Positions 2,012 to 61,734 of a stretch of 64,000 bases of DNA are shown here, in pieces. The translations under genes were made by a program, and so were the position numbers. Source of the DNA: Macrostomum lignano (Eukaryota). How positions within the stretch are numbered: position 1 is the stretch's first letter; each line of letters begins with the position of its first letter. The stretch lies in the NCBI GenBank assembly GCA_002269645.1, contig NIVC01002548.1:1-64000 (forward strand), written 5' to 3'. Under the pieces are notes generated by a model, which had not been told where the DNA came from, made no database searches, and worked only from the letters and a program-made list of their open reading frames with translations.

Positions 2012-2352
2012 TCACGCCCTCAGATCCGCTTTCTTTCCATTGTCCTTTTTCAAGTCGTAGGCGGTGATAACATCCGGCATGGCTTTCTGTACGTACATCA
2101 TCGGGTCGCGAGGTCCGTCGAGCAGGAAGTGTGTTGTGAGGTGACCAACGCCCTTAACAGTGATGGAGCCCCTGGTCTCAAAGCTGTAGCCTCTCTGTTC
2201 CAGGCCTTCCCGCACGGTTCCCGTCACCTGTATGCGATCTTGAAGTCCGCTGCTCTCCATTCTTGAAGCGATGTTGACCGTGTCGCCCCAGATGTCGTAC
2301 TGGGGCTTGCGCGTGGCGATCACTCCGGCGATTACCACGCCGTGGTTCACTC
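2012..2352 (-). CDS. Adenylyl cyclase exon 11 (C2a end)
   Basis: aacccag|[36 protein letters not shown]...TGA 2012. Confidence 0.95.
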
Positions 2353-5300: not shown

Positions 5301-8300
5301 AAAATGCTTACCTCTACTATGTAAGTAGACTAATGCGGATTTTAAATTCGCAACTCACCATTCGATCTGTTGTGAAGGCCACAGCGCAGGCGAACAGCGT
5401 GGTTAAGGTGACGAACGAGAACAGGTAAATTGGCACCATGGTCATCGAGCTGGAATGAGCGCGAGTTAATTGGTGAAAAGCATCTCATAAAACCAGCCTA
5501 AATGCTGGATTGTTTGCATTTGATTGGCATTGGGAAATGACAATAAGGGGAAAAAGGCTGAGTTGAGCTATCGACACTTCAGGATTCAAGTCGAGTGCTC
5601 TGCAAAGTTTGCAATAAGCACTTTATGAGTCTCATTTAGAAGAGAGAGCAGGGCTCGTAACAGTTGAAAAATTATGGTCAAGTGAGAGACTTGGAAACTT
5701 CTGCAGTCTGGCTGAAGTCTCATATCCTGGCTGTCTATGGGGATGATGAGCAGCTTTGATTAGCAGGTTGGTCCAAATTTGATGGCACTGTTGCCAAAAC
5801 TAGAAATTCACTCGCTTTAACAGTTCAATATTAGTCCGCACCTCGAATCCACCGCCAGTCTGCATACCCTCAACCTGTCTACCAATCTGTGTCCCTATCT
5901 ACCAATCTGTGTTCCTATCTACCAATCTGTGTTCCTATCTACCAATATGTGTCCCTATCTACCAATCTGTGTTCCTATCTACCAATCTGTGTTCCTATCT
6001 ACCAATATGTGTCCCTATCTACCAATCTGTGTTCCTATCTACCAATCTGTGTTCCTATCTACCAATCTGTGTTCCTATCTACCAATATGTGTCCCTATCT
6101 ACCAATCTGTGTTCCTATCTACCAATCTGTGTTCCTATCTACCAATCTGTGTTCCTATCTACCAATCTGTGTTCCTATCTACCAATCTGTGTTCCTATCT
6201 ACCAATCTGTGTTCCTATCTACCAATCTGTGTTCCTATCTACCAATCTGTGTTCCTATCTACCAATCTGTGTTCCTATCTACCAATCTGTGTTCATATCT
6301 ACCAATCTGTGTCCCTATCTACCAATTTGTCTCCTTATCTTCCTATCTGTTCTCTATATCTACCAATCTAGCTCCCTATCTACCAATTTGTCTTCCTGTC
6401 CCTACCTACCAATCTGTTCTCCCAATCTACCAATCTGTGTCCCTATCCACCAATATGTCTTCCTACCAACCTATACCAATCTGCCTCCCTATCTAGTACA
6501 CATTAATTCACAATCAATTATCTATCTCCAACTATACCCACACTGAACTTACCTACGCTGAGTCAGAATTTGAACGCAAAACGTGCCAGTGAGAAAGGCC
6601 AACAGAAGACAGCTGACTTCAATGGAGAAGTAGGGATCTCTCACGGTGCCGAACTGCAGATAGAGAGTTGCAGCGAAATGAACAAAATATATAAGGATGG
6701 TTAGGCTGTAACTATGAAGTTGACCCAGTTTATAATCCAAACTTTAACTCACACAGTGGGCAATAGTCTGACCTAGACTGTGACCTAGACTGTGACCTAG
6801 TCTGTCAACCAGCCTGTGACCCAGACTGTGACCCAGACTGAGACCCAGACTGTGACCCAGATTACGAGTATGACCCAGACTGTGACTCAGACTGTGACCC
6901 AGACTGTGACCCGGACTGTGACCCAGACTGTGACCTAGTCTGTGACCTAGACTGTGACCCAGACTGAGACCCAGACTGTGACCCAGATTATGACCCAAAC
7001 TGTGACCTAGTCTGTGACCTAGACTGTCAACCAGCCTGTGACCCAGCCTGTGACCCAGACTGAGACCCAGACTGTGACCCAGACTGTGACGTAGTCTGTC
7101 ACCTAGACTGTGACGTAGTCTGTCACCTAGACTGTGACCTAGTCTGTGACCTAGACTGTGACCCAGACTGAGACCCAGACTGTGACCCAGATTATGACCC
7201 AAACTGTGACCCAAACTGTGACCCAAACTGTGACCCAGACTATGGCTTTTATCAACAATAATCCTGATAAAAATATTCCCGACCTTCTTTTCCAGCCGGG
7301 GAAGCTTGAACCGCAGGTTGACGGGGTGGCAGTGCTCCTGGTACAAGCTGTCGATGGTATGAGACTGGATTGCCGAGCTCAACGCTTCGTTGATTACTGC
7401 ATCATTGACGCTTCGAGTTCGGTTGCCGTGATCATCGACTCCCATTCTAGTGGCGATTGTTTAGAGTAGAGTAAAGTCGAGAAGAGTAGAATAGAATAGA
7501 GTAGAGTAGAGTAAAGTAGATAAGAGTAGAGTAGAATAGAGAAGAGTAGAGTAGACAAGAGTAGACTAGAGTAGAGTAGAGTAAAGTAGATAAGAATAGG
7601 GTAGAGTAGAGTAGAGTAGAGTAGAGAGTAGAGTAGACTAGACTAGACTAGACTAGACTAGAGTAGAGTAGAGTAGAGTAGAGTAGAGTAGAGTAGAGTA
7701 GACTAGACTAGACTAGACTAGACTAGACTAGACTAGACTAGACTAGACTAGAGTAAACTAAAGTAGAGTAGAGTAAGGAGTAGAGTAGAATAGACTAGAC
7801 TAGAGTAGACTAGACTAGAGTAGAGTAGAGAAGAGTAGAGTAGAATAGAGCAGAGAAGAAACAAGCAGACTAGAGCAGAGAGTAGAATAGACAGTAGCAA
7901 AGCACCAATGAAGCCAGGTATGCAAAAGCAAAACTGACCCAGCCACCTTTTATGAATGTGAGATGCCGGCCGCCTTCCCTGACCAGCAGGTTCTGCTGCA
8001 TCGCCGCAGTGCTGAGGCTGCTGCTGCTGGTCAGCCGGCACCACCAGAAAAGTTTTCACCCGATGCTCTCTCAGATAAGCGTGCCGGCTTTCACCTTCGC
8101 CGTCCTCAAAGCTGTAATCTCCGCCGAGGCTGTCGCGGGTCACCTCGGTGATGTGCACCCGGCCAGGCCGGCCGCTGGACTCCAGGATCTCCGCCAGGTA
8201 GACGTCGCCCGACCAGACGTCGAACTGCAGTTTGTCGCGGCCGAGAACTCCGCAGATCACCGTGCCGGTGTGAATACCGACTCTCATGTCCACCGGGGCG

Positions 8301-11300
8301 TTGGTCATCACGCGGACTAGTCTGCCGATATGTATCGATAATAGAATTAAAGCCAAGCAGATTTAAAAAATTTGCCGATATGTATCGAAGTTAAAATAAA
8401 ATCCTGTCTATTATACATGGCCTATCTTATATAAATGTTCCCGTATATAGGGTTTGCCAATTAGGAGCCGTAGCCCAGTGGTCCAGCGCGGCGCTCTGAT
8501 GTACCAGCGGCCCAGGCTCGATTCCCAGTGTAGCCACACATTAATTTGGGGCTAAATTGGAATCTCGGCTTGGCTCTGCTCGGGCAATTAACGCCCTTGA
8601 GAACCAACCCCCCCCAAGGCGCAGTGAAGTGTACATGCCTAACGATAAATAAAGTCGGGGCCACTGTACACTCCTGTGTGAGTGCCTGTGCGTATGACTG
8701 CGTACGTGTCTGGGCGCTTGTGTGCCTGCTCAGGGGAGTCGGCGGAATGGGCAGTAATGCCTCTCGCCGGTTGTGTGACAATTTCGCCTAAAGTGCGCTT
8801 AAAGTCCCCTTTGCTGGCTGCCTCTAGGTTAGCCAGTTTAGGAGTTTTACCGATATGTATCGAAAGTCAATTTAAATTACACGTTCAATATGTATCGAAG
8901 ATTGAGTGGGAATAACACTCATTTTCAAACATTGCCGATATGTATCAAAACTGAGCTTACTCATAAATCATTTTCAAGCTCGTACTCGTATTTTAATAAG
9001 TCATGAGCATAAACTGACACTTTAAAATTTTATTAGCCCGCCCAGGCAGTCATATTTTATCGATGATGAAGAGCTGCTCCACAGTCCAATAAATTATGCT
9101 GGAGTTCGGCCTGAAGCCGGGGCTGCCGTCCGAAATTCGGGACTCCCGCTGAATCTGGGCCGCTGTGCCCAGGATTTGGACCGCAACAGCATGTACAGTC
9201 TGAGCCATGTGGGCTGGCCTTCATGGGTGTGAATTGACAGACCCCCCCCAAGCACCAAACGAACGCGTTTACGCACAAAATCCAACCAAGGGCCGTGTGG
9301 TGCAAAAGTCAAAAATAAAATTTCAAGCTCATGAAACTTTAAGCTTGTGAAAGTCGCACGAAAAAAAACTGGTGCTGATGATATCGAATGTCACATCGTC
9401 GAAGGCACTAAACTTTAATAATCTTAATTATTAAAACGTTTGAGGCCCACTCACGATATGGTGGAGATCATGTCCAAGCCCATCTCAACGCAGCACTTGG
9501 CGTGGTCGGCCCTGGGTTCCGGCAGTCCGGACACGCAGTAGTAGCAGTCACCCAGCAGCTTGATCCGCAGGCAGTTGTTGCTTTCAGCCAGCTGGTCGAA
9601 TCTGGCAAACAGAACGTTGAGCAGCCGGACGATGAACTCCGGGTCGTTCTGACGACACAGCGTGGTGAAACCGCAGATGTCCGCAAACAGAATGCTGGAA
9701 ATGCCGAGTCATCTTGGTTCAATTCTGTGCATTCAAAAAACTAATCATTGATTAGTTATCGAGCCAGCATGACACACTGTAGCACTGACGCATAGTTCTC
9801 ATTCATGGTCATTGTGACACGAGGCGAAGTCGGAATTTTGCAGGAAATTTGAAGAGGCCATCAAGATAAGTCGAGTGCTTAGGTCGAAGTGCATAAGTAA
9901 CTCTCTGGGATTTTAGAGATGCCGACAGCCTTGAGAGCTGAAAATTAGCTGCTTAAGGATTAAGAAGTTCTTAATGACGACAGGTAAAAGTCTCAGTCAG
10001 AGCCGGCTACGGCCTGTTGACCTGAGTTTGAGGGAGTTATTCGCACTGCATAGTCTCTGCAGTTCCGCCCTTTGCTTGCCTCATCCTCTTTAGGCTCTCC
10101 TTCTCCGTCTAAAGCTGTCTGTTTTCACTTCGTGACTCCGACTTTGAATTTTCATTTCCAGCATCTTTGCTCGTCCCCTCTTGTTCCTCGTTCAGCCTCC
10201 ACCAGAGATTAATATAGCCTGCATAATAAGTGTACACCAGGCAATGCAGCTACACCTGCCAAAGTCAACGAATCAAAAAAACAGCCCGACCCAGCTTGTG
10301 AAATGCAAACATGCAGCTACTGTATGCATGAAGTAGAAAGTTCCACTTTAACTATTTTATATTTGTACGAATTCTCTTTTGGCTACCAGTTTAGAAGATG
10401 TTTAATCTAGTGGGTAAAGTGGGTATAGTAAGCCTCAGCATTAGCTTCAGAAGTTGCTAAAATCAAAATTAGATTGTATCTTACTTAAGTACGAAAGGTA
10501 CTTAAATATACTTCAGTATTATTCATTTTTCGCACTCAGTCATGCGTACAAAAAATTCAGATGTACATTTGGCCTTCGCTGGGGGGGGGACGAAATTCAG
10601 ATGTACATTTGGCCTTCGCGGGGGGGGACGAAATTCAGATGTACATTTGGCCTTCGCGGGGGGGGACGAAATTCAGATGTACATTTGGCCTTCGCGGGGG
10701 GGATGAAATTCAGATGTACATTTAGCCTTCGCGGGGGGACGAAATTCAGATGTACATTTGGCCTTCGCGGGGGGACGAAATTCAGATGTACATTTGGCCT
10801 TCGCGGGGACGAAATTCAGATGTACATTTGGCTATATACTTGATCTTGGTCTATATACCAAGAAATTGATTAATTAAACAAAACATTAAAAACAAAACAC
10901 GTCTTAGAAACCGAATGTTGCTACTCACCTAACATTTTCATGTCTCTGTATGTAAACTTTGTTAAACATCGATCTGTGCGCTGGATTCTTCTCGGGATGT
11001 AGCAGCGGAGACGCCACGTACTCCGGCAGAAGCGACAGTATCAAACGGTCCTTGGGTAAATCAGTTTGTTAATTTTACTATTACATTTTTATACAGAAGA
11101 ACGTTACAATCGTCATTTTTTACTCCTCTTGACTGAGCGGGTGCTGTTTATCCCGAATCGATTTAAGGATCTGTGGTGACCACTAGGAATGATTCGAAAG
11201 TTGCTACGCAAGAAAACCATTGAAGAAAAAGTAATTAATTCCCTTTGGTTTTTGCAGGGCTTCTCGTGTGAGGAAAAGTATCAGCAAGAAATCATTGAGT

Positions 11301-14039
11301 AGAATAGACTCACTTCGGCTGCCTGGATACTTTAAGCTCTGGGCTTGAACTTCGATCTTATTGTGGCCAATGTGACAGCAGACCCTAATGCATTCGCTCT
11401 CATTTCCTTTGAGTTTATAAGGCTTCCTGTTTTGATTTTTGTCTTATGGATTTTATGCTTGTTAGTCTCATCAAAGTGAAATATTCGCCTTCACTTCCCG
11501 CCATTTCTCTTTGCAGAGTTTCCCTAGCCGGCGCTCACCAGCTTCTCCATTTCCAGCTTGGCGCGCAGTCCGGCTTCGTAATAGCGCCTGGTTTCCAGGA
11601 AAGTCTGCCGGCGGCCCATCTCCACGGGGCCGTGCACGAAAACGCCCACTATGTTTGCGGCGAGCAAGTAGAACGCGTTGGCCGCAAGCTGCATGCAAGG
11701 GCAATGGGGGTTCAATGTACACCAGCCAGCTGCTACGGGGTGAAGAATTCAATATACATTGGCCATGTCACTGTGGGGTGGGAGTTCAATGTACATTGGC
11801 CAGCCACTGGGGGGATAGGAGTTTAATGTACATTGGCCAGCCACTGGGGGGATAGGAGTTCAATGTACATTGGCCAGCCGCTGAGGAGATGGGAGTTAAA
11901 TGTACATTGGCCAGCCACTGGGGGATGGGAGTTCAATTTACATTGGCCAGCCACTGGAGGGATGGGAGTTCAATGTACATTGGCCAGCCACTGGGGGGAT
12001 GGGAGTTTAATGTACATTGGCCAGCCGCTAAAGGAAAGGAAATTTAAAGTAAATTATCCAGGGTATGGCAAATTGTTGTACCGATTAGCCAATCAATCTG
12101 TCAATGCGAGTTACGTGATTCAATATTACGGAAACTAAAGGTCGATATGACGATATCAGAACAGAAAAGTGACAAAAAAGCTTTTATCACACACAAAAAT
12201 TTTGACTACCACTACCAGCTCGTCACGAATGTGATTTCTAATCCGTGAATTAAGGAACCAGTTTGAGAGCTTAATCTCTACAGAAAACTTGCTAGATCCG
12301 ATCCAAAAGAATGCAGAAATGTTCTGTCTACCTTCAGCCTGCGAGCGTCAGTCGATGTGACTGACTCGGGGACGGGGTGGACTCCGGCCGCCCCCCCCCC
12401 CAGGGGCATGAGAGGCAGGACTTCTCACAGTTGAGTGCGCAGGCGAGTGGACGACAGGCCTTTTGCCCGTGATCTTGTCGGGCCTAATTAGAGCGAGGCG
12501 GCCGTCAGGGTGTGAAAACGGGAGAATGTGGAGCAAAGATAAGATCCCGCTCGCTTCATTCAGCTGCTCAGTTCCTACTGGCACTGATACATTTTCTGAC
12601 GTGACCTCCAACCAATAAAAGCTGCATTTTCGTGCAAGGTTATTTGGCTTAGGCTGACATCGCGTTTAAAAAGCAGTGAGCTGTTTACGCTTGAGCAGTC
12701 ATCAATTTGAGAACGGTCGCCCGCGTGTCCGGTGGATATTCAGGTGGGGGCGAAGTGACCTCGGATGACCTTTTAGTGCTTACCTCGAATGGCAATCATC
12801 AAGGTTTGAGAAACCTTGATAATTGCCATAATTGGGAGAAAATCACACGCTCTTCTAATTGCACTCAAACGTGGAACTGTTGAAAAATTACCCGTTTACT
12901 CTGACTACAACCCGGGTGTAGCGGCCAAAATCCCAAGATTTCGACGCTACCCTAATTTATTAAATCAAATAGGGATTCGGGCAGACAAGATGATTTATTT
13001 GCTGCTGAGCCATTGAGTGTCTCTGAAATCTGGTTGAAAAGCAATGAGCCTACTCGCAGAATTGCTACAAAGTGTAGCGATGGCGAAGATGCTGGTTCAA
13101 GCGAGAGACGCCACCCCACTCCAGCTCGCGTACCCGAGCACCGAAATCCGGTCGGTTCATTCCAGAAATTCTAGACAACAGGTGCAGCATCATGATGAGG
13201 CCGCAGCAGGCCAGCAGGCTGCGAACACGCAACGGCAAGAACAGGTAGGCGATGACCGTCATCAGCGAGCTGGTGAACAACCCGCTGCTCGGCTTCCAGC
13301 ACAGCGGATCTGGCTCCTCGCCGATGCGAATGACGCTGGCGCCCTGCAGCAGCAGGAAGCAGATGGCCAACCCGTAGCTCAGGTGCTGCTGCCGGGCCAG
13401 GCCAACGCGACAGCGCAGCATACCAATCAGGAGACCGCTGAAGCCGGCGAAGGCGACAGTGGAGAGGCTCAGGTGCAGCAGGGTGTTCTCAGATGGACCG
13501 CGGGCCGTCTGCGGCAGCTGCGTGACGGCGGAACCGGCGCTCAGAAGCGTCAGCGTTGCCACCAGAACGAGCAGGGAGCGATGGTTCAGCCGGCGAAAGT
13601 ACATCTGGTAGAGCTGCTCGAGCTCGGCGCCTGGGAACACCTTGGAAGAGAAGAGGCACTTGAACAGGATGGCCAGGAAGCGCCAACTCTCAGCGCAGTT
13701 CGCCGGCGGCTTGGTGTGCAGCAGGTCGCTGATGGTGTCCCGGTTCGGGTCCAGGCGCTGCAGGGCAGAGCTGTGCGACGATTCGGAGTCTCTGGGCCGA
13801 GTGTTCCATCGACCGCTGCTACTGCCAACCTTGCTGCCGCCGCGCGCACTGGCGGTGCCGCCGCCTTCGCTGCCACCGATTCTGACAATTTTCGTCGTTC
13901 TCTGAAGTCGCTGCCAGCCCGACGGGCGATCCGGGTTTCTTCGAAGCATTCGGGCGACTTCCTTCGGCGCCGATATTTGGTCGCCGTTGCCGACTGAAAC
14001 TGGATCGGCGTCCACCATCGGGGCCGGGTGGACGCTCAT
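2012..14039 (-). CDS. ADCY5/6: Transmembrane adenylyl cyclase (ADCY5/6-like), 11 coding exons, about 1165 aa
   Basis: Exons 14039-13134, 11688-11539, 11050-10929, 9694-9455, 8321-7947, 7446-7284, 6741-6553, 5449-5359, 4648-4514, 3875-3092, 2352-2012; GT-AG introns, phases consistent except exon 6/7. C1a motifs [30 protein letters not shown]; C2a motifs [29 protein letters not shown] (Lys/Asp ATP-specificity residues and Asn/Arg intact). [13 protein letters not shown] and [17 protein letters not shown] resemble ADCY5/6 from memory; subtype needs phylogeny. Confidence 0.93.
2692..3058 (+). repeat. 25-bp minisatellite (AAACAGACACAACTGACACAATACC)n
   Basis: About 14 tandem copies in cyclase intron 10. 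Confidence 0.95.
3092..3875 (-). CDS. Adenylyl cyclase exon 10 (TM10-12, most of C2a)
   Basis: acttccag|[11 protein letters not shown]...[14 protein letters not shown]...[17 protein letters not shown]...FKMRIG|GTGAGT, 784 nt, phase 0/1. Confidence 0.95.
3951..4365 (-). repeat. Same 25-bp minisatellite in inverted orientation (GGTATTGTGTCAGTTGTGTCTGTTT)n
   Basis: The unit is the exact reverse complement of the 2692-3058 unit; cyclase intron 9. Confidence 0.95.
4514..4648 (-). CDS. Adenylyl cyclase exon 9 (extracellular loop)
   Basis: tttacag|[25 protein letters not shown]...AMPE|GTGAGA, phase 0/0, with an NWT sequon and Cys residues. Confidence 0.85.
4806..5066 (+). mobile_element. tRNA-derived SINE, family A, copy 1
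   Basis: A-box-like TAGTGGTCAGAGC, B-box GGTTCGATTCC, 47-nt block 4896-4942 identical to 16578-16624, AT-rich tail. Confidence 0.75.
5359..5449 (-). CDS. Adenylyl cyclase exon 8 (TM9)
   Basis: ctcattccag|[30 protein letters not shown]|GTGAGT, phase 2/0. Confidence 0.85.
5876..6500. repeat. 20-bp minisatellite (TGTTCCTATCTACCAATCTG)n
   Basis: Tandem copies degenerating toward 6500; cyclase intron 7. Confidence 0.95.
6553..6741 (-). CDS. Adenylyl cyclase exon 7 (TM7-8)
   Basis: [29 protein letters not shown]...[18 protein letters not shown], strong donor GTAAGT at 6552; acceptor phase conflicts with exon 6 by one base. Confidence 0.75.
6768..7242. repeat. 12-bp minisatellite (GACTGTGACCCA)n
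   Basis: Cyclase intron 6; source of the LGHS-repeat pseudo-ORF. Confidence 0.93.
7284..7446 (-). CDS. Adenylyl cyclase exon 6 (C1b)
   Basis: ccactag|..[38 protein letters not shown]|GTCGGG. Confidence 0.8.
7464..7880. repeat. Pentanucleotide microsatellite (AGAGT)n/(AGACT)n
   Basis: Cyclase intron 5. Confidence 0.95.
7947..8321 (-). CDS. Adenylyl cyclase exon 5 (rest of C1a)
   Basis: tcggcag|[19 protein letters not shown]...QFDVWSGDV...GRVHIT; donor AG|GTGGCT chosen because its phase fits exon 6. Confidence 0.9.
8464..8800 (+). mobile_element. tRNA-derived SINE, family B, copy 1
   Basis: A box TAGCCCAGTGG, B-box-like GGCTCGATTCC; colinear with 21088-21401 including an identical 69-nt block (8714-8782 = 21317-21385). 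Confidence 0.78.
9455..9694 (-). CDS. Adenylyl cyclase exon 4 (C1a metal-binding Asp residues)
   Basis: tttccag|[12 protein letters not shown]...[34 protein letters not shown]|GTGAGT, phase 2/2. Confidence 0.95.
10553..10832. repeat. About 36-bp minisatellite GAAATTCAGATGTACATTTGGCCTTCGC(G)nAC, 8 copies
   Basis: Cyclase intron 3; variable-length G run. Confidence 0.93.
10929..11050 (-). CDS. Adenylyl cyclase exon 3
   Basis: cccaag|[13 protein letters not shown]...[11 protein letters not shown]|GTGAGT; too short for the ORF track; phase 0/2. Confidence 0.9.
11539..11688 (-). CDS. Adenylyl cyclase exon 2 (TM6, RQTFLETRR coiled coil)
   Basis: gcatgcag|[15 protein letters not shown]...EMEKL|GTGAGC, 150 nt, phase 0/0. 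Confidence 0.9.
11708..12030. repeat. About 38-bp minisatellite GGGAGTTCAATGTACATTGGCCAGCCACTGGGGGGAT
   Basis: About 8-9 copies abutting the exon 2 acceptor; cyclase intron 1. Confidence 0.92.
13134..14039 (-). CDS. Adenylyl cyclase exon 1 (N-terminus, TM1-5)
   Basis: ATG 14039 (MSVHPAPM); five hydrophobic segments; donor GTACGC at 13133, phase 0. An in-frame acceptor at 14094 lies upstream. Confidence 0.88.
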
Positions 14040-15460
14040 TGCCGTCCTCAGGATGAAGTTTCTGTGGCTTCTGAGTGCTGATTTAATTGGATCCTGCAGC
14101 AAGATAGAAATGGAGTAGTTTTGTTGGTGCTCTACAGGTATTAGCGGGTTACCGTATTCAACAACAACGCAAAAAAGGTCTTGTGTTTTCACAAAATATG
14201 AGCAGCATCACAGGGCAAACGTCGCGTGTGTTCAAAGTACTCAAAGTACTTATAAAGGTAATTCACAACGAAAATCGGTTAAAAAGTCACAAGGAAGACC
14301 TCAATCTTCTTTAGAAGATCATCTTCGTTCACGGAAAAAAAATCATGCGGACGCACAGACAGACAGAACCAATTCTGTATATTTCAGGTAGGGACGATTA
14401 CCGGTATTCAAATAGGAATACCTACGAATTTTCAAGCGTTGTAGCTGAAACCTTGATTCAGACTTGGCTTTGCCGCCGCTTCCGAACTCGAAGAGCTCTT
14501 TCTTCTTTTGCCATGCAACTCGGGCAGATGGAGAGCTGTTTAAATAGCCGTTAAAGCCTCCCTCCAGCTTCGATTAAATGCATTGGTGCAATGTTGCCGC
14601 CCCAGCTCGGCTGTTTGCTCACCAGAGTAGATAAGGAAGCAGGGTCGGACTTGAGCAAGTGAGGCTCTTAGCAACAGCTGAGGCCAAACTAAGATTTCGT
14701 ATGAGATTTGATAATAAAGAGAACACGTGTGTTTCTGAGATTCTGGGCCACCCACATCCTTAGGCTTATTCTACTCGTACTCGCGTAGACGTGCCGCATC
14801 GATATGAATTTTGTCAGGCCCAGCTTCCCAGCTGCATCACACATTGGAGTAGTCCTTCAGACTCGATAGGCAACAGTCTGACTGAGGTTGGACTTAGCAT
14901 AAATCCCGAGCTGATACCGCTGGGCCTTCGAACTCAGACTTTATGAAGTCTTTTCCCGTGAAACATAAGTCAACTCTGGTTGAGCAAGCATGAGATAAGA
15001 GCACAAAACTGCTGAGGCAAAATGTCAGGCATCGTGGTGTGATGGAAAATCTGTTCTCGGAAGCTTATCTGTTACTGAAATTCGAAAGACAACAAAAATT
15101 TCGCTTACAGTGTTGATGAAGCGGGATTCTGTGCGGTATAAGAAAGAAAAGCACAGAAATGCATTTGAAAATTTTATGCACGCGGGCTTCGCACATTCAA
15201 AAATCAATTTCGATGATTGCGGTGAGGTCATCGCCACAATCAGTCATTTTGCCTGCGTTTATTGTCATCTCGTTCAACGGTTACTCAGATTGCTGAATAA
15301 GTAGTAGAAATTATTTATTAAAGCTGCTTGCAAATTACTTTATTGACCATTTTGGCAGGAAAAATAGTCAATTTTCACTTGAATCTCAAATAGATGACAA
15401 GTTTGCTTTCTTTAAGTGATCGTGTTGTCAGTTGGTCATTCATTTCTGGATCCTTGGCTG

Positions 15461-16842
15461 TCACTCCGAACGCTTTTTTAGGATGTCCCGGTCCAGCATG
15501 AAGTCGGGGTACCTGGTGAAGCGCTTCTTCAGAATGCCACGGTCCAGCATGAAGTCGGGGTACCTGGTGAAGCGCTTCTTCAGAATGCCACGGTCCAGCA
15601 TGAAGTCAGGGTACCTGGTGAAGCGCTTCTTCAGAATGCCCCGGTCCAGCATGAAGTCGGGGTACCTGGTGAAGCGCTTCTTCAGAATGCCACGGTCCAG
15701 CATGAAGTCAGGGTACCTGGTGAAGCGCTTCTTCAGAATGCCCCGGTCCAGCATGAAGTCGGGGTACCTGGTGAAGCGCTTCTTCAGAATGCCACGGTCC
15801 AACATGAAGTCGGGGTACCTGGTGAACCGCTTATCAAGGTGCTTGATGCCGTCGTCCTGGTGAACGTTCTTCGTATCATCATGGTGCTTCTCTGCACCAG
15901 TTACATCCAATCTGCAAGGGAGAATGCAAAACTTCAGAATTAGACCACATGTAGCTGAAGGTCAAGCAAGTCCAGTTGCATTCAGTGCCAGTATTTTCTT
16001 CAAGGGGCCACCTTATCACGAGCTAAACTTAATAAAAATGTAATCAAATCCGTCTCTGCGACCCTGGGCGTCTGTCTCTTGTCACGGAATTTTGTGTTAC
16101 TACGCAGGCCAAAAGCTCCTCAGACATCTCAAGAGCTCTTCTGGTAAAAAGAGACCTTGGGCTTCTCAGTTTAGACCACAGACGCCCCTATTTATTCCAG
16201 ATTATGTAAGCCCAATGATTAAAAGTTTATATACATTTTACAGTCCACTGGGACTGCAGGTGATCTCTTGTCAGCGTGTGTCCCATCCCAAATCTTGGGT
16301 TTCAGATCTGAAGTCGCATAGGAAAGACTAATGCATTGAGAAGCTCTACAATGAAAGCTCAAAGGCCAGAGGTGTCAACTCAGAATTTCGCTATCCGTTC
16401 AAGAATTCGTGTTCTATCCGCTTTCCTAGTTTTGAATTGGGTCCTCGCAGCAAGAGGCGGTCTGTTGTTAGACCAAAAATGTGTTGTAGCCTAGTGGTTA
16501 GAGAGGGGTTCGATTCTCAACCTACTTAAAAAATTGTATCCTTAAGCATGAAATTTAATTCTGCATTGCTTCACTACACCCAGCTGTAAAATGGGTGCCA
16601 GCATTAGCTGGGGTAATTGAGGGTAAGTGTGGGGACCCCCCAGTCCTTGGACTGAACAGCCGTACGCAGCCTTCAGATGCTTCAGAGCTGTCGGCTGCAC
16701 ATTTTCCCATTATGGCAGGTGTAATGAAAAATACAAATTTTAAGACGTGTCATTTAAACTATTTAGCTAGGCAGATAGTTACTACAGGAACTCACACCAC
16801 GGCGCCGAGCAGGACTATCGACAGAATCAATGGCGATCGCAT
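15461..16842 (-). CDS. Neuropeptide prohormone, 165 aa, 2 exons (16842-16796, 15911-15461); 7 copies of FTRYPDFMLDR(G/D)IL
   Basis: Exon 1 ATG..MRSPLILSIVLLGAV GT|GTGAGT (phase 2) joins the acceptor ttttgcattctcccttgcag|A TTG (phase 2). Product: signal peptide MRSPLILSIVLLGAVVLDVTGA, acidic/His spacer, then KR/KKR-separated peptide copies. AATAAA on minus at 15344-15339 and 15319-15314. Confidence 0.88.
16481..16710 (+). mobile_element. tRNA-derived SINE, family A, copy 2 (in the prohormone intron)
   Basis: TAGCCTAGTGGTTAGAG...GGTTCGATTC head; shares the core and 3' body (CCCCAGTCCTTGGACTGAA.AGCCGTACGCA) with 4806-5066. Confidence 0.75.
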
Positions 16843-17367
16843 GGCAAAGCACTTTCTATAGTCAGAAGCGGAGCCTCTTCAGAAAGTTCCTTTCAGAAAG
16901 AGGGTCTTTTTAATTGTTGAGAGACTCTATCGCTGGGAAGCAGATGGCTCGGTAATGAAGACAAATGCGCTTGGAATAAAGGAAAAAGTTTTTATGCCAG
17001 CGACTCGGCTCTCTGGGCTAGAATGCGCCGTTATAAAGGGAAGCGTCACTGGGAACTCGCGCGCCTCCACACTCCCCGTCCCCTGCAGCAGTCGCAGCCA
17101 TCGCATCCGCGCCTTCTCTCATCTTCCCAACCTTCCATTGGCTGCTGGGCCTCCTTGCCATTTTCCTATGCCTTTGCGGGAAAGAAATTGAGAAGCGTTT
17201 GAAGGATCGCCCGGTCTAAAGATGATTAATTGACAGGGTCAGAAAAGTGACTTCATACTGGCCATCTTAATTTAAGAATTGAGGGATGACCTGAAAGCGT
17301 ATTGAAACTCAAAATTTGAAACTTAAAAAGTTAAGCGATTGGCATTAGCGCTGCGGTGGGATTTTAA

Positions 17368-19410
17368 CCCTCAGGTGGCAGAGGTGGGATGTGAACCCTC
17401 GGGTGGCAGAGGTGAGATGTGAACTCTCGGGTGGCAGAGGTGGGATGTGAACCCTCGGGTGGCAGAGGTGGGATGTGAACTCTCGGGTGGCAGAGGTACA
17501 TGTATGATGTGAACCCTCGGGTGGCAAAGATTGGATGTGAACTCTCGGGTGGCAGAGGTGGGATGTGAACCCTCAGGTGGCAGAGGTGGGATGTGAACCC
17601 TCGGGTGGCAGAGGTGGGATGTGAACCCTCGGGTGGCAGAGGTGGGATGTGAACCCTCGGGTGGCAGAGGTGAGATGTGAACTCTCGGGTGGCAGAGGTA
17701 TGATGTGAGCCCTCGGGTGGCAGAGGTGGGATGTGAACTCTCGGGTGGCAGAGGTACATGTATGATGTGAACCCCCAGGTGGCAGAGGTGGGATGTGAAC
17801 CCTCAGGTGGCAGAGGTGGGATGTGAACCCTCAGGAGGCAGCGGTGGGATGTGAACGCTCGGGTGGCAGAGGTGGGATGTGAACCCTCGGGTGGCAGAGG
17901 TGGGATGTGAACCCTCGGTGGCAGAGGTGGGATGTGAACCCTCGGTGGCAGAGGTGAGATGTGAACTCTCGGGTGGCAGAGGTATGATGTGAACCCTCGG
18001 GTGGCAGAGGTGGGATGTGAACTCTCGGGTGGCAGAGGTGGGATGTGAACTCTCGGGTGGCAGAGGTGGGATGTGAACTCTCGGGTGGCAGAGGTATGAT
18101 GTGAACCCTCGGGTGGCAGCGGTGGGATGCGAACCCTCGGGTGGCAGAGGTGGGATGTGAACCCTCGGGTGGCAGAGGTGGGATGTGAACTCTCAGGTGG
18201 CAGAGGTGGGATGTGACCTCTCAGGTGGCAGAGGTGGGATGTGAACCCTCAGGTGGCAGCGGTGGGATGTGAACTCTCGGGTGGCAGAGGTGGGATGTGA
18301 ACCCTCGGGTGGCAGCGGTGGGATGCGAACCCTCGGGTGGCAGCGGTGGGATGCGAACCCTCGGGTGGCAGCGGTGGGATGCGAACCCTCGGGTGGCAGA
18401 GGTGTGATGTGAACCCTCGGGTGGCAGCGGTGGGATGCGAACCCTCGGGTGGCAGCGGTGGGATGCGAACCCTCGGGTGGCAGCGGTGGGATGCGAACCC
18501 TCGGGTGGCAGAGGTGGGATGTGAACCCTCGGGTGGCAGCGGTGGGATGCGAACCCTCGGGTGGCAGCGGTGGGATGCGAACCCTCGGGTGGCAGCGGTG
18601 GGATGCGAACCCTCGGGTGGCAGAGGTGGGATGTGAACCCTCGGGTGGCAGAGGTGGGATGTGAACTCTCAGGTGGAAGCGGTGGGATGTGAACTCTCAG
18701 GTGGCAGAGGTGGGATGTGAACCCTCAGGTGGCAGCGGTGGGATGTGAACTCTCGGGTGGCAGAGGTACATGTATGATGTGAACCCTCGGGTGGCAGCGG
18801 TGGGATGCGAACCCTCGGGTGGCAGAGGTGGGATGTGAACCCTCGGGTGGCAGCGGTGGGATGCGAACCCTCGGGTGGCAGCGGTGGGATGCGAACCCTC
18901 GGGTGGCAGCGGTGGGATGTGAACCCTCGGGTGGCAGCGGTGGGATGTGAACTCTCGGTGGCAGAGGTACATGTATGATGTGAACCCTCGGGTGGCAGAG
19001 GTGGGATGTGAACCCTCAGGTGGCAGAGGTGGGATGTGAACCCTCGGGTGGCAGAGGTGGGATGTGAACCCTCAGGTGGCAGCGGTGGGATGTGAACCCT
19101 CGGGTGGCAGCGGTACATGTATGATGTGAACTCTCGGGTGGCAGAGGTGGGATGTGAACTCTCGGGTGGCAGAGGTGGGATGTGAACCCTCGGGTGGCAG
19201 AGGTGGGATGTGAACTCTCGGGTGGCAGAGGTGGGATGTGAACCCTCGGGTGGCAGAGGTGGGATGTGAACTCTCGGGTGGCAGAGGTGGGATGTGAACC
19301 CTCGGGTGGCAGAGGTGGGATGTGAACTCTCGGGTGGCAGAGGTGGGATGTGAACCCTCGGGTGGCAGCGGTGGGATGTGAACCCTCGGGTGGCAGCGGT
19401 GGGATGTGAG
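17368..19410. repeat. 28-bp G-rich minisatellite (GTGAACCCTCGGGTGGCAGAGGTGGGAT)n
   Basis: About 70 copies with recurrent variants (GGCAGCGG, GGTACATGTATGAT). Confidence 0.96.
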
Positions 19411-20624
19411 TCTTCAACCTTTATTCAAGATCGTCTCAAATTCAGAAGCCACATAACATTCACTTACTTCTCGGCACCTCGATAATATGCTGAAAATATT
19501 TTTCCCACCCCTCCCCACAAAACAAGTGCACCCACTGAAACTGAAAATAATTGATTTGGCTAGAGAAATCAATCACTTTATTGTGGGTGGCAGTGATGTA
19601 TCTATTTTATTCCCTTCAATTCTTTCTCTCTCTCTACTTGTAATCCCGACCCTTTTTCCCCCAGTTTCCTTCTATATCGTCTCCTTCCAGCATCCATCGC
19701 GAAACAGATGAAGCGAGCGGGCATAAACTGCCTGGATATTTCAGCTCGCACAGACAGGCAGGAGATCCCAGAACAATCCCTGTTCCCCAGACCCCAATTG
19801 CACTATTTGATCAGCAAGGGGGAGGCAGCACACGGCTTGCTCTCTTTATCAGCCCCTGCTCGCGCTAATTGAGTTATAAGCGGACAGGAATGACACAGGG
19901 AATTGAGCTCTTGCCTGACCCTGTCACGGCTGGTGCAATTTAAATCCGGGCCCTGAGAGCGCAGAGCCAGGTTTAAAGTTACTCGCTCCTGTGTGATGGC
20001 TTTTTCGACTAAAAACTTGCTTAAAAAGCTCATCGGCTAAACTTGTTTGTCAGAGTTCTCTCATAGCTGCATGCTCGCAAAAAAAGATTATTAAAGTTTC
20101 AAGTGAACTTTTGCAACACTGTCCCGATGGGGCGTGGATAATCTGAGATTATTCAGACCGAGCGAACAAACATCCATCATCCAGACCAGACACTGATAGC
20201 GGTGTTTGCAGTTGAAATATTGTGTCAATATGTACGTTTAATTAAGCAAATCGAAAAGTTTCACCTGATTGGTCTGAGAAATGATGGTGTCCGCGTTCTC
20301 ATTTGAAAAACAAGTTTGACTAATCGGTCGGTCTGACTATTTTGAGCTGAACTCAAACAATGTTTTTTCCATTTCTCCCACAGCGAGCGGTAAGGCAGAT
20401 CCGCTCCGTTCCGCTGACTCCCGAACACGCGCTCACACAGGGTGTACCGGTACAGCTGCCCTGACTTTATTTATCGTCAGGCATGTGCACTTGGAGGTGT
20501 TGGCCAAGGACCACTAGGAACACTTCGTTAGTCTAGTCTAGGCTAGTAGTCCTTGGTGTTGGCTCTCATGAGTGTGAATCGTACGACAAGACTGACCAAT
20601 TTTGATGTGTCCGCTCACGGAAGG

Positions 20625-21480: not shown

Positions 21481-22430
21481 ATGAAAATAAGAATATTCCA
21501 CTTTACCTACGCGTTGCCTTTACTACTACTAAAAGTAGGTGAGAAAAAATTTCTGATTGCTTTAAATTCCAAAAGCTGGACGCTTGTTAAAATAATCTGG
21601 AATCAAAGATTGCATTTTATTTTGTTGGGTGCCTGCAGGCATGCGATTGAGTGGAGGAGGTGCTCAATGCTTTGGAAAAATCGGATGTGTTTCCTAGCAA
21701 ACAAAATGCTACAATATGATCATAATAAATTACAGAATGTGAGCTGTGCTAAATTGCTTGAGTAAATAAGGTGACAGAGAATCTTTTCAGATGTGCAGTC
21801 TCTTCTTCATCGTCGATAGACAGTTCTCATCACTATGACCATACTCATCACTATGACCATACTCATCACTATAACCATACTCATCCCCATGATCATCCTC
21901 ATCACTATGACCATACTCATCCTCATGACCATCTTCATCACCATGGCCATCCTCATCACTATAACCATACTCATCACTATAACCATACTCATCACTATGA
22001 CCATACTCATCACTATGACCATACTCATCACCATGACCATAGTCATCACCATGACCATAGTCATCACCATGACCATACTCATCACCATGACCATAGTCAT
22101 CACCATGACCATAGTCATCACCATGACCATACTCATCACTATGACCATACTCATAAACATGACCATACTCATCACTATAACCATACTCATCACTATAACC
22201 ATACTCATCACTATAACCATACTCATCACTATAGCCATATTCATCACCATGACCATAGTCATCACCATGACCATACTCATCACTATAACCATACTTATCA
22301 CTATAACCATACTCATCACTATGACTATACTCATCACCATAACCATACTAAGAAAATTTGCATCACCATCAATAGGATCCTTCCCAATGAACACCAGAAA
22401 AGCTTTACGAGTCCAGGTAGTATTTGCTAG
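21481..22430 (+). CDS. Candidate secreted His-rich repeat protein (exons 21481-21538, 21799-22430; 229 aa)
   Basis: MKIRIFHFTYALPLLLLKV G|GTGAGA joined to gtgcag|TC gives a signal-like N-terminus plus (HHYDHT)n; AATAAA at 22460-22465. The model needs the second AG (21798) rather than the stronger AG at 21790, so it may just be an 18-bp minisatellite. Confidence 0.33.
21820..22350. repeat. 18-bp tandem repeat (CATCACTATGACCATACT)n
   Basis: About 29 copies; stop-free in several frames. Confidence 0.95.
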
Positions 22431-22532
22431 AGCTTGCATGCCTATAACAAAATTTGATCAATAAACGTCTGGGATCACTACTGCCTGCATCCCATTATAG
22501 CAGGACCCCCCACAGAGTGACCGAGCGACTTC

Positions 22533-25133
22533 CTAGGCCAGACTGAAGTGCAGCTCCGTATTTGCCGGCAGCGCGGCCCGGGCGCCGAGAACCGCGTGCG
22601 GCGACACGCTGCAGCCCAGCAGGTTGAGGTAGACTAGATTCGGGCATCCGTTGGTTGCTAAGGCCGACAGGCCCTGTTGAAATGGAATCAAAATAACAAT
22701 TATAACATGAAGATTCGTGAAGGTACCGTGATATTCACGCAATCGCATTGCAACTCTCACCCCACTGATCCATGACGCAATTTCATTGCAACTCTCACCC
22801 ACCTGATCTATGACGCAATCGCATTGCAACTCTCACCTGATCCATGACGCAATTGCATTGCAACTCTCACCCACCTTATCTATGACGCAATCGCATTGCA
22901 ACTCTCACCTGATCCATGACGCAATTGCATTGCAACTCTCACCCACCTGATCTATGACGCAATCGCATTGCAACTCTCACTTGATCCATGACGCAATTGC
23001 ATTGCAACTCTCACCCACCTGATCCATTACGCAATCGCATTGCAACTCTCCCCTGATCCATGACGCAATTGCATTGCAACTCTCACCCACCTGATCAATT
23101 ACGCAATCGCATTGCAACTCTCACCCACCTAATCCATTATGCAATCGCATTGCATCTTTCACCTGATCCATGACGCAATTGCATTGCAACTCTCACCCAC
23201 CTGACCTATGACGCAATCGCATTGCAACTCTCACTTGATCCATGACGCAATTGCATTGCAACTCTCACCCACCTGATCCATTACGCAATCGTAGTGCAAC
23301 TCTCACCCACCTGATCTATGACGCAATCGCATTGCAACTCTCACTTGATCCATGACGCAATCACATTGCAACTCCCACCCATCTGATCCGTGGAGCGATC
23401 GCATTGCAACTCTCACCCACCTGATCCATTACGCAATCGCATTGCAACTCCCACCCATCTGATCCGTGGAGCGATCGCATTGCAACTCTCAACTGATCCA
23501 TGATGCAATCGCATTTGCAACTCTCACCCACCTGATCCGTGACGCAGTCGCATCCGCGAAGGGTCAGTCGGGTGAGTCTGGCTGAGCAGCCGCCAGCGCT
23601 TGCCAGTGCAGAGACGGCGTCATCCGTGACGTCGCAGCCGCCGAAGTCCAGCTCCAGCGGCGGCCCGGCCGGCCCGAGTCCGCGAGCGAGCCGTTCGACG
23701 CCCAAATCGGTGACGCGTCGGCAATCGCGGAGGCTCAGCTGCCGCAGGTTGGTCGCTCGGATCGCGATGTGAAAGAGGACTTCGTTGTTGATCTGAGAGC
23801 GATTGTTTGGTTACGATTGGCATCTTGCATCGTTAAAACTTGATGTATATTGAAGTTTGATTGCAAAGTGTTCTCAAACTAATTTGCGCTGAAACTCTTA
23901 GGTTTTATAAATAAAGTTCGATTTAAAAGACTGTAGTCTTAGCTCGTGTTCTGTTTTGGTAGATGTTTTTATCGGCTCTCTCAGTCTCTGGCCAGACCCC
24001 TCTAGGTGGAAGGTCCGCTAGACGCGAGCAGAAAGGTGGGTCTGCTGTTTCCATACTTGCGGAGAATATGACAATGAAGCCTCCATATCCTGTACAGCGA
24101 CGTTCAGCCGAAGTATGACGTCGATATCCATCGATTTAATGTAAAAGTACACGTCTGTCAGCGACGATGCTATGCTAGACGTGTGCAGTCATTCACTCCA
24201 AGGTTCAGTGACTGGTGGACTCCCTGAAGGCTGGGTGCAGCGAATCAGACGCACGCACACACAACACAGCACACAACAGCAGGGCAAGCAATGAGGACTT
24301 ACACCCTCGCAGCGGACCAGAGCCAGACTTCGCAGCCTTCGTCCGCACCGTCGCAGCAGCCGCTCCAAGCCGATTTCGCTGATCTCACGGCCGCTGTCGG
24401 CAAGCCGGAGCTCGCGGAGGCCGGGGCAGCCGCCGCCGGAGCCCAGCGCCGCCAGGCCGCTGTCGGTAACATTCGGGCAGCGGCGCAGGCAAAGGCGGCT
24501 GAGGCGCGGGCACATTCCATCGCCGAGGGCGCGCAGGCCAGAGTCGTCGACGCCGCGACAGTCGGCAACTTCGAGGCTGATAAGACGCGGCGCCGTCACC
24601 GGCAGGGCCAGGGTGACGCCGTGACAGGCCGCCAAGCGCAGATGGCGAAGGCGCTGGCAGCCGTGGAGCAGCTCGCGGGCGCCGAGCGCTGTCAGGCGCG
24701 GACAGGCGCGAAACGCGGCTCGCTGGAGACGCGGGCACCGGGAGCCAAGCAAGCTGAGCGCCCTGTCGGTCAGGGTGATGGAATTCGCCACGCTGACTCG
24801 AAGCAGGCCCAAGCAGTGCGGGTAGCTGGCGTAGCTGAGAATCTTCGTCACGCTGTCGATGGCCGCGTTGGCATCCAGGCGAGGATCGTGCAGCTCCAGG
24901 CCGGTCCACAGAGCCGGGTGCCAGGCGAGGCGGTACCAGGAGCGGCAGACGGCGGCGCAGCGGCACAGCTGAGGCGAGTCCAGGTAGCTGAAAGCCAGCA
25001 GGAGGACTCGGTCTGGCAGCTGCGGCTGCGCTGGCTCCTTCCGCTGCTGTTCCGGAGCCAGCGCATGCACTTTCCCGACGGGTTCAGCGCTGTCGCTTGG
25101 CAGTCCTTGACGTTCGCCTGTGGCTCTGCTCAT
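22533..25133 (-). CDS. FBXL7: F-box and leucine-rich repeat protein, FBXL7-like, 410 aa, exons 25133-24303, 23792-23532, 22673-22533
   Basis: F-box LPDRVLLLAFSYLDSPQLCRCAAVCRSWYRLAWHPALW (FBXL7-type LAW.P.LW), Cys-containing LRRs (L..C..VTD.GL..L); GT-AG introns all phase 0; probable 78-nt 5'UTR intron 25247-25170. Confidence 0.9.
22735..23531 (-). repeat. 38/34-bp minisatellite made of FBXL7 exon 2 end plus donor site
   Basis: Unit TGCGATTGCGTCATGGATCAG|GTGGGTGAGAGTTGCAA versus the true junction TGCGACTGCGTCACGGATCAG|GTGGGTGAGAGTTGCAA; about 22 copies. Confidence 0.92.
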
Positions 25134-26553: not shown

Positions 26554-30420
<3,867 letters not shown>

Positions 30421-35810: not shown

Positions 35811-36194
35811 CGGCCTCTCTAAAAATATTTGAGTGCAGCGAGGACGCCTGTTTCGCACCTGTTCGAACCGGCTCTGTCCGACTCTCACCTGGATTGCAAA
35901 GTTACCCCACATACGTTCAAATTTACAATTTTACTCAAAGAGACCAGGAAACGTTTAAAAAGCAGCTCAAAGGAACAAAATAAGAAAGCAAAATGTTTTT
36001 TCCAGACACATAGGCCTCAGCAGCGGTGGAACAAACAGCTCTTAGTGCTGTAACCTGATTGATACCTAGGGGAGTGGTGAATTTGCCTAATTGCATTGGT
36101 AGCCATGGGTGTATTCTTTCACTGAAGTAAACAAAGAGAGGAGGTTGCTCAAAATCTAAAAATAATCTCCCTCCTATCTACTTTGAACTTTACT

Positions 36195-36830
36195 CTCCCT
36201 TCTCTCCTCTCCTCTCGTCTCACTTCTCTCTCCTCTCCTCTCTCCTCTCCTCTCGTCTCACTTCTCTCTCCTCTCCTCTCTCCTCTCCTCTCGTCTCACT
36301 TCTCTCTCCTCTCCTCTCTCCTCTCCTCTCGTCTCACTTCTCTCTCCTCTCCTCTCTCCTCTCCTCTCGTCTCACTTCTCTCTCCTCTCCTCTCTCCTCT
36401 CCTCTCGTCTCACTTCTCTCTCCTCTCCTCTCGTCTCACTTCTCTCTCCTCTCTCCTCTCCTCTCGGCTCACTTCTCTCTCCTCTCTCCTCTCCTCTCGG
36501 CTCACTTCTCTCTCCTCTCCTCTCGTCTCACTTTTTTCTCCTATCCTCTCGGCTCACTTCTCTCTCCTCTCTCCTCTCCTCTCGGCTCACTTCTCTCTCC
36601 TCTCTCCTCTCCTCTCGGCTCACTTCTCTCTCCTCTCTCCTCTCCTCTCGGCTCACTTCTCTCTCCTCTCTCCTCTCCTCTCGGCTCACTTCTCTCTCCT
36701 CTCTCCTCTCCTCTCGGCTCACTTCTCTCTCCTCTCCTCTCGTCTCACTTCTTTCTCCTCTCCTCTCGTCTCACTTCTCTCTCCCCCTCTCCCCCTGCCT
36801 TCTCTTATCTCCCCCTCTCTTCTCTCCCTC
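36195..36830. repeat. CT-rich repeat (CTCTCCTCTCGTCTCACTT-type)
   Basis: Direct reading. Confidence 0.92.
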
Positions 36831-37369
36831 TTCCACTCTCCTCTTTCTGCTCATCTCTCTAATCTCATTCTCCTCTATCCTCTCTCCTCTCTGCTTCTCA
36901 GAGAGCATTTCTACTCTCCTTCCTCATTTTCTGCCTGTCTGTCCTGTGCCTCTCTCCCCTAATCGCGTGGATGTGGTAGCCTGCAGGCTATTACAGGTAT
37001 TAGTTTAATATTCGGAAATGCACAACTTAAGACCCTCAATCAACCGAGTGAGTCTTTCATGCGTGCAGGCCTCGATCTGGAGATCATTCAGCCGACAATG
37101 AGCAGATGGCGAAATCGGAGACTCTAGCAGGAGATGTTCTCTTCTGCCTTGTCAAGCTTGAGCAAAATGGCAAGTATTAGCTGGATGAGTAAGTTTTCAG
37201 TTGAATGCCTCATGAGATGAGTTCCTCATGCCAACTAAAAAGGCCTGTGTCTCAGTGCCACAAGCCATTGCTGGCTAAAGTATAAACCTTAAAAGTGTAG
37301 TGATCGAAAAAGTTCCCCGAACCCAGTTTAAGCGTTCGATTCTTCCCAAATTCAAAATTCTCATTTGAA

Positions 37370-61654: not shown

Positions 61655-61734
61655 CTGCGAATATTGGCGACGGCGAGAATGAGGATTGAGGCGATTGACT
61701 GACCGAGTTGTACGAGGGGGAGTGCGGGTTTTAA

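Follow-up and report, generated by a model that had tools for sequence, protein, structure and literature searches.

A tandem-repeat exon in the flatworm Macrostomum lignano encodes a predicted precursor of multi-copy, non-amidated peptides, probably neuropeptides

Neuropeptide mining routinely turns up multi-copy peptide precursors that are restricted to one lineage. Among the described non-amidated peptides that occur in multiple copies, arthropod orcokinin has the sequence NFDEIDRSGFGFN. The pedal peptide of Aplysia reads PLDSVYGTHGMSGFA (PMC5860471). In flatworms, the prohormone families of Schmidtea are nearly all amidated (Collins et al. 2010, PMC2953531 Table S4), and two non-amidated, multi-copy precursors of Schmidtea mediterranea, ppp-1 (RSFYDPIGGGLL) and ppp-2 (FRYFDKIGSDLL), have been described as "pedal peptide prohormone-like" (PMC2953531 Table S5). 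Here we analyse a gene of Macrostomum lignano whose product shares its layout with planarian and annelid precursors, namely a signal peptide, a short spacer and (in those precursors) non-amidated 10-12-mers bounded by KR or KKR. The neuropeptides of M. lignano, which serves as a transgenic and regenerating flatworm model, are poorly described as a set, and the gene provides a concrete candidate ligand. It lies within a stretch of 64,000 nt (positions 1 to 64,000 of contig NIVC01002548.1, assembly GCA_002269645.1; hereafter the window), where a 51-bp "minisatellite" was recognized, from a reading of the sequence and its spliced translation, as the main exon of a two-exon gene on the minus strand. 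The product is probably a convertase-processed, non-amidated and lineage-restricted multi-copy peptide precursor, and the peptides that it would release are probably neuropeptides.

The coding part of exon 1 (16842..16796, minus strand; 47 nt, ATGCGATCGCCATTGATTCTGTCGATAGTCCTGCTCGGCGCCGTGGT) encodes MRSPLILSIVLLGAV plus two bases of Val16 and covers the n- and h-regions of a predicted signal peptide. It is followed by a phase-2 intron of 884 nt (16795..15912, minus strand) that opens with the donor GTGAGT and closes with a polypyrimidine stretch and TTGCAG; the 3' end of the intron reads TTTTGCATTCTCCCTTGCAG, and the acceptor can be written as ...TTCTCCCTTGCAG. Three GT dinucleotides are crowded together in the donor region (GTGGTGTGAGT), and exon 2 is in frame only with GTGAGT, that is in phase 2. 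Exon 2 (15911..15461, minus strand; 451 nt) completes Val16 and encodes LDVTG, the predicted c-region of the signal peptide (15896..15911), then the acidic, His-rich spacer AEKHHDDTKNVHQDDGIKHLD with the first dibasic site KR (15827..15895), then seven in-frame units of 51 nt, each specifying FTRYPDFMLDR(G/D)IL and KKR with Gly in units 1-6 and Asp in unit 7 (15470..15826), and finally Ser-Glu-TGA (15461..15469; all on the minus strand). Tandem Repeats Finder (TRF) delimits the array at 15471-15832, with a period of 51 bp, 7.1 copies, 95% matches and no indels. The spliced coding sequence (CDS) of 498 nt translates into 165 aa with zero internal stops, and an upstream in-frame stop is located 14 codons before the ATG. 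A preliminary description of the locus had proposed both this two-exon model with its phase-2 junction and AATAAA motifs past the stop. The former is upheld by the GTGAGT and TTGCAG sites, by the uninterrupted product and by a GenBank protein with the same junction (see below); as to the latter, three AATAAA poly(A) signals are present on the minus strand (15339-15344, 15314-15319 and 15258-15263), at 117, 142 and 198 nt past the stop.

The sole match in a word-indexed search of 5.8 billion proteins was the M. lignano protein BOX15_Mlig001732g5 (PAA83947.1, UniProt A0A267GET4; 114 aa), which is named "hypothetical protein" and has no Pfam domain. PAA83947.1 starts with MRSPLILSIVLLGAVVLDVTGAEKHHDDTKNVHQDDGIKHLDKR, the same as the predicted product including the intron-split Val16, and spans the predicted junction (...LLGAVVLDVTGAEK..., i.e. 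...GAVVLDVTG...); the window product does not differ from it in signal peptide, spacer, junction or peptide sequence. The Mlig_3_7 annotation from which this protein stems was built from RNA-seq only, using StringTie/TACO and BLAT-mapped de novo transcripts, and the ends of genes were set by trans-splicing and poly(A) reads (PMC5730564). Because this annotation is purely RNA-seq-derived, PAA83947.1 lends the 16796|15911 junction indirect support at the transcript level. The best explanation of these data is that the two-exon gene is genuine and expressed in M. lignano, the support for it being indirect and transcript-derived.

The GenBank locus that encodes PAA83947.1 (NIVC01000393.1) aligns with the window almost without mismatch, and the only difference between the two introns is a 1-nt indel. 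The repeat number is different, with seven units in the window (15470-15826, minus strand) and nine at NIVC01000393.1 (locus L001, 11010-11474), and the array thus behaves as a coding variable-number tandem repeat (VNTR) at two near-identical loci. PAA83947.1 itself contains four units. Every unit contains CCAG|GTAC, which allows a GT...AG "intron" of n x 51 nt to be placed in frame at any point of the array, and the four-copy protein is probably a collapsed short-read transcript that was threaded onto the genome. With regard to annotation, the locus had been characterized as unannotated-looking, which is apt insofar as the product has no name and the annotated repeat number is wrong, but not insofar as a near-identical locus is annotated as a hypothetical protein. 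The accompanying suggestion that repeat masking would hide such a gene fits the procedure used for Mlig_3_7, in which transcripts overlapping the repeat annotation were taken out before GenBank submission (PMC5730564). The lesson for annotation is that a tandem-repeat coding exon can be removed by repeat filters and collapsed by short-read assembly (four copies in place of nine), and precursors of this kind are probably under-counted in M. lignano and similar genomes.

We also considered that the open reading frame (ORF) is a by-product of the minisatellite and that the transcript and the protein are annotation noise. Dozens of repeat-derived ORFs of 110-826 aa are found elsewhere in the window, the plus strand of the array is likewise open (143 aa), and the repeat count of the GenBank protein disagrees with that of the protein's own locus. 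This explanation is nonetheless very improbable in our estimation, as several lines of evidence argue against it. First, the repeat period equals exactly 17 codons. Second, sequence variation follows the proposed frame. The window units vary by TTG/CTG, CGT/CGG and CCC/CCT, and the last unit differs by GGC>GAC, ATT>ATC, CTG>CTA, AAG>AAA and CGC>CGT, with Gly>Asp as the sole amino-acid change. When the seven window units were pooled with the nine units of the near-identical GenBank locus (16 units), 11 distinct variants were obtained at 10 positions, 10 of which are synonymous in the proposed frame versus 22.9% expected (binomial P=3.4e-6, a value to be read in the light of 11 variant types from concertedly evolving arrays at two near-identical loci). 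The proposed frame is the best of six: the antisense frame reaches 7/11, because it has third-codon positions in common, and the other four reach 1-2/11. It had been noted beforehand that variation among the copies is nearly all synonymous and that the TTG/CTG change is non-synonymous in antisense; both statements are borne out, the latter by an S/N difference in the plus-strand ORF (RSSMKSG versus RSNMKSG). The analysis supports purifying selection acting on the peptide frame. Third, the array is preceded by a separate ATG exon with a hydrophobic leader, reached through consensus splice sites in the sole workable phase, and is followed by a stop and AATAAA. Fourth, a transcript-derived annotation carries the identical junction. 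Finally, the GC content at third codon positions (GC3) is at coding level, with 0.81 for the CDS compared to 0.77-0.84 for the exons of a G-protein-coupled receptor (GPCR) gene and a deaminase gene in the window, the whole window having 47.7% GC.

The spliced translation reads MRSPLILSIVLLGAVVLDVTG, AEKHHDDTKNVHQDDGIKHLD, KR, six times FTRYPDFMLDRGIL-KKR, once FTRYPDFMLDRDIL-KKR and then SE before the stop, and the unit-by-unit translation thus matches the arrangement that had been put forward at the outset. At the N-terminus, M-R-S, with Arg2 forming the n-region, precedes a hydrophobic 14-residue core at residues 4-17 (PLILSIVLLGAVVL), hydropathy peaks at ~3.05 over residues 5-17 (Kyte-Doolittle, 11-residue mean) and drops after the core, and the -3/-1 rule, applied by eye, places cleavage at the small-residue motif VTG|AE, where Val occupies -3 and Gly -1. 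A cleavable signal peptide is therefore predicted. The spacer comprises 21 residues (computed isoelectric point, pI, 5.6; grand average of hydropathy, GRAVY, -1.87), and the basic sites consist of the KR ahead of copy 1 and the KKR behind each of the seven copies. As no copy has a Gly before its basic site (the copies end in GIL-KKR or DIL-KKR), amidation is not expected, in keeping with the earlier prediction of a non-amidated peptide; all seven copies end in IL before KKR. The computed average masses of the 14-mers are 1744.0 Da for FTRYPDFMLDRGIL (pI 6.0, net charge ~0) and 1802.1 Da for FTRYPDFMLDRDIL. Each unit additionally holds the string K-K-R-F-T-R|Y, in which P1 and P4 are occupied by Arg and P6 by Lys. 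This arrangement of basic residues fits the monobasic/furin-type cleavage rule, and on this basis an extra cut at R|Y could possibly yield an alternative product, the 11-mer YPDFMLDRGIL (1339.6 Da).

On the basis of this layout, we propose that the signal peptide would direct the precursor co-translationally into the endoplasmic reticulum, that in the regulated secretory pathway it would be cleaved by PC2-type convertases behind KR44 and behind every KKR, and that a carboxypeptidase would trim the basic residues. Six copies of FTRYPDFMLDRGIL and one of FTRYPDFMLDRDIL, each with a free C-terminus, would then be released along with the acidic spacer peptide, and the peptides would most likely act on a putative GPCR as neuropeptide or peptide hormone. 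M. lignano possesses a neuron-specific PC2 homologue (RNA815_2403.2) with expression in the nervous system, whose knockdown by RNA interference is lethal, killing hatchlings (PMC4490696). Similarly, reporters driven by the PC2 promoter label the nervous system of M. lignano pan-neuronally (PMC12435804).

A secreted product outside the nervous system must be weighed against this proposal. The gene could encode a gland product, a water-borne or mating pheromone, a seminal-fluid peptide or a defensive peptide that is matured by furin-type enzymes in the constitutive pathway. In addition to KKR, each unit contains R-F-T-R, a minimal furin-type motif; fast-evolving reproductive or exocrine products typically lack homologues, as does this gene (see below); and the neuronal site is deduced from the precursor layout. 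By contrast, the layout closely resembles that of planarian and annelid neuropeptide precursors, a net charge of ~0 and a pI of 6.0 do not conform to the cationic antimicrobial type, and the copies are held identical by selection, as expected of a receptor ligand. We regard such a non-neuronal role as unlikely. The label "neuropeptide", as applied in the preliminary description, was overstated, as it derives from the precursor architecture.

Homology searches returned no relatives of the precursor. An exhaustive phmmer search of 1.84 billion representative proteins gave only the protein itself and six spurious repeat matches (TPR proteins and translations of simple repeats among them), JGI metagenome contigs yielded no homologue when scanned, and Pfam produced nothing above threshold on the precursor. 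One metagenomic candidate with FTIYPKAMLDKELLG repeats (P0007, 53% identity) was dismissed as a chance match, because its 3-kb JGI contig carries co-directional, tightly packed genes and the protein is devoid of dibasic sites. Within the window, tblastn disclosed no second copy of the gene elsewhere. The strings FTRYPDFMLDRGIL, RYPDFMLDR and YPDFML were absent from the full-text literature searched, and the identifier Mlig001732 was found neither in the full-text literature nor in the supplements of Wudarski 2017 and Mouton 2018 (PMC5730564, PMC5946080). Likewise, YPDF, LDRG, MLDR, DRGI and FTRY do not occur in the supplements of Collins et al. 2010 (PMC2953531).

We then compared the peptide with known families. 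The amidated flatworm families (FLP, NPF/NPY, RL/RMamide, Wamide and others) and allatostatin-A/buccalin were ruled out on the grounds that there is no Gly donor before KKR. The planarian ppp-1 and ppp-2 precursors resemble the M. lignano precursor in that they come from a flatworm and contain repeated non-amidated copies with KR/KKR flanks, their peptides being 11-12-mers that end in LL, and the R-Y-x-D start of the ppp peptides is shared with (T)RYPD of M. lignano. Conversely, the D-x-I-G core of ppp-1 and ppp-2 is absent from the M. lignano peptide, and the unit length is 17 in M. lignano versus 14 in ppp. Pairwise alignment of the M. lignano peptide to ppp-1 and ppp-2 was no better than to shuffled sequences (p 0.35-1.0), and alignments to spp-16, Schistosoma japonicum npp-26, Aplysia pedal peptide, orcokinin and Caenorhabditis elegans NLP-15 were equal to those of shuffles. 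Orcokinin and Aplysia pedal peptide are also multi-copy, non-amidated and of similar length, and orcokinin contains [IL]-D-R; unlike these two, the M. lignano peptide has no C-terminal GF motif.

When ppp-1 and ppp-2, and subsequently their first hits, served as seeds for profile searches, a larger family (MLD) was recovered that includes the Platynereis dumerilii "Pedal peptide neuropeptide 2 MLDpeptide" (V5TCS9). Its units take the form KR-MLDx[IV]Gxx[LI]L-KKR, with variants such as MLDRIGSSLL-KKR (P0013) and MLDPIGAGIL-KKR (P0020). Like the M. lignano precursor, V5TCS9 and its transcriptome relatives have a signal peptide, a short spacer and many non-amidated copies (~10-mers in their case) bounded by KR, KKR or RKR. 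In MLD units a Gly is present and LL, LI or IL precedes KKR; the M. lignano unit ends in F-MLDR-GIL-KKR, with a three-residue gap. The core of the MLD units is contiguous and directly follows the basic site, whereas the M. lignano unit is three core residues short and has FTRYPDF in front; a contiguous core [MFY][LFYM]-D-x-[IVL]-G-x-x-[LI]-[LI] near the peptide N-terminus is not found in it.

One alternative is that the gene is the strongly diverged macrostomid counterpart, by orthology, of the spiralian MLD/pedal-peptide-2 precursor, which belongs to the pedal peptide/orcokinin family. Three core residues of MLDx[IV]Gxx[LI]L would then have been deleted (MLDR---GIL) and the seven residues FTRYPDF added in front. 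In that event the mechanism would be the same, the classification would differ and there would be no new family. MLD(R), G, IL/LL and KKR of the P0013 and P0020 units recur in F-MLDR-GIL-KKR, and the overall architecture (multi-copy, non-amidated, bounded by KR/KKR) is alike. A hidden Markov model (HMM) of 39 family units scored the M. lignano unit at 3.5 bits in two fragments, with 135 of 5000 shuffles as good (2.7%), and the best Smith-Waterman alignment to any family unit was equalled by 71 of 2000 shuffles (3.6%), so that the unit beats ~97% of shuffles in both comparisons. On the other hand, an earlier, narrower HMM was matched by 135 of 2000 shuffles (6.8%), hhalign against the planarian profile gave a probability of 3%, and BLASTP against an MLD precursor gave E 0.42. 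Moreover, the MLD comparison was picked post hoc, after ~10 other families had been tried, and a P of ~0.03 is for this reason not significant. The M. lignano protein was not among the matches of profile searches seeded with family members, and phmmer with the M. lignano protein returned no MLD/ppp family members.

Two further observations bear on this alternative. First, no canonical M. lignano member emerged from the planarian and annelid profile searches, as would be the case if the present gene were the derived local representative of the family; equally, the canonical gene may have been lost to the GenBank filter on repeat-overlapping transcripts, and either explanation would account for the absence of an M. 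lignano protein among the family hits. Second, a conserved C-terminal peptide RQLDExxEGxIGR of the annelid-type MLD precursors, present in P0008 and P0012-P0021, is missing from the M. lignano precursor, which ends in KKRSE and the stop; this peptide is not universal in the family, since Schmidtea ppp-1 and ppp-2 also lack it. Taken together, the MLD/pedal-peptide-2 likeness is weak and provides a lead rather than membership, and we accord derivation from an MLD precursor a minor, though real, share of the probability. The exclusion of pedal peptide and orcokinin in the preliminary description was too firm in view of the resemblance of MLDRGIL-KKR to MLD units, weak and short of significance as this resemblance is. 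The idea that the peptide may define a new family accords with the lack of a clear match to any described family and is plausible but not secure given the weak MLD likeness.

The MLD/pedal-peptide-2 precursors appear to form a coherent family in their own right in transcriptome assemblies (Logan ERR550402 contig L002; P0008 and P0012-P0021). The C-terminal peptide RQLDE[IT]xEG[FLA]IGR is common to these precursors, and only the Platynereis member has been named.

Several considerations weigh against our interpretation of the locus as a genuine, lineage-restricted neuropeptide gene. The transcript model behind PAA83947.1 is imperfect, as it has four repeats versus nine in its own locus. The predicted signal peptide is based on hydropathy and the -3/-1 rule, the neuronal role of the gene follows from precursor architecture, and the small and non-independent variant set of the selection test calls for the caution stated above. 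Protein and metagenome searches detected no orthologue outside M. lignano, and hence no cross-species conservation that would back function, the predicted peptide is non-amidated, and none of the known neuropeptide families compared gave a significant motif match. Having weighed these points, we still favour a convertase-processed, non-amidated peptide precursor. Its finer placement is tentative: the gene may well represent either a Macrostomum-restricted peptide family with a copy-number-varying coding VNTR or an MLD/pedal-peptide derivative that arose by core deletion and N-terminal extension. The biology of a dibasic-site prohormone is conventional; the gene lacks detectable homologues, and its copy number differs between near-identical loci. 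If the family is restricted to Macrostomum, each transcript would encode a peptide dose that evolves rapidly; if it derives from MLD, the gene would illustrate how a bilaterian neuropeptide drifts beyond recognition via core deletion and N-terminal extension.

Additional features were noted around and within the gene. A tentative 3' splice-acceptor-like site (16856..16876, minus strand), recognized by sequence only, consists of the pyrimidine-rich CTCCGCTTCTGACTATAG ending in TATAG, 13 nt upstream of the ATG, and is a possible spliced-leader trans-splice acceptor of the peptide mRNA; ~39% of M. lignano genes are trans-spliced (PMC5730564). In the intron, a tRNA-derived element had been suspected from the T-arm-like GGTTCGATTCTC on the plus strand and was dropped, because ARAGORN and Rfam came back empty, with no tRNA and no Rfam match in the intron.

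Exons of an adenylate/guanylate cyclase gene extend over 2012-14192 on the same (minus) strand as the peptide gene, with a Guanylate_cyc domain (E 6.9e-19) at 2754-3914, cyclase-like ORFs at 2012-2350 and 7748-8356 and a membrane-region ORF at 13065-14192 (minus strand); the first cyclase exon is situated ~1.1 kb downstream of the poly(A) signals of the peptide gene. M. lignano has multi-gene transcriptional units that are resolved by trans-splicing (PMC5730564), and co-transcription of the peptide and cyclase genes is conceivable from their arrangement. The window also contains a rhodopsin-type peptide GPCR gene on the plus strand (exons 48732-49217 and 49956-50777; Pfam 7tm_1, E 4.5e-30 and 1.2e-22), for whose joined product galanin receptor 2 is the nearest solved structure (E 4.7e-47), followed by somatostatin and opioid receptors. 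This galanin-type GPCR was entertained as the receptor of the peptide and rejected, as the two genes are linked by proximity only (~32 kb) and the peptide is without the amidated C-terminus of allatostatin-A/buccalin ligands.

Minisatellites are very dense in the window and give rise to long ORFs in two to three frames on both strands, which we regard as repeat artefacts. Such stretches are located at 17355-19417, 2623-3058, 5889-6546, 21771-22464, 28541-29080, 36183-36962, 38058-39470, 39868-41021, 41144-42250, 43248-44519, 45455-47949 and 61490-62644; examples are an array with a 28-bp period and ~40 copies just upstream of the peptide gene, and an 826-aa ORF at 45469-47949. Two other genes on the minus strand encode an F-box/LRR protein (exon 23361-25133; F-box-like, E 3.4e-14) and an adenosine deaminase (editase) of the ADAT1/ADAR type (58786-61583; A_deamin, E 1.3e-58).

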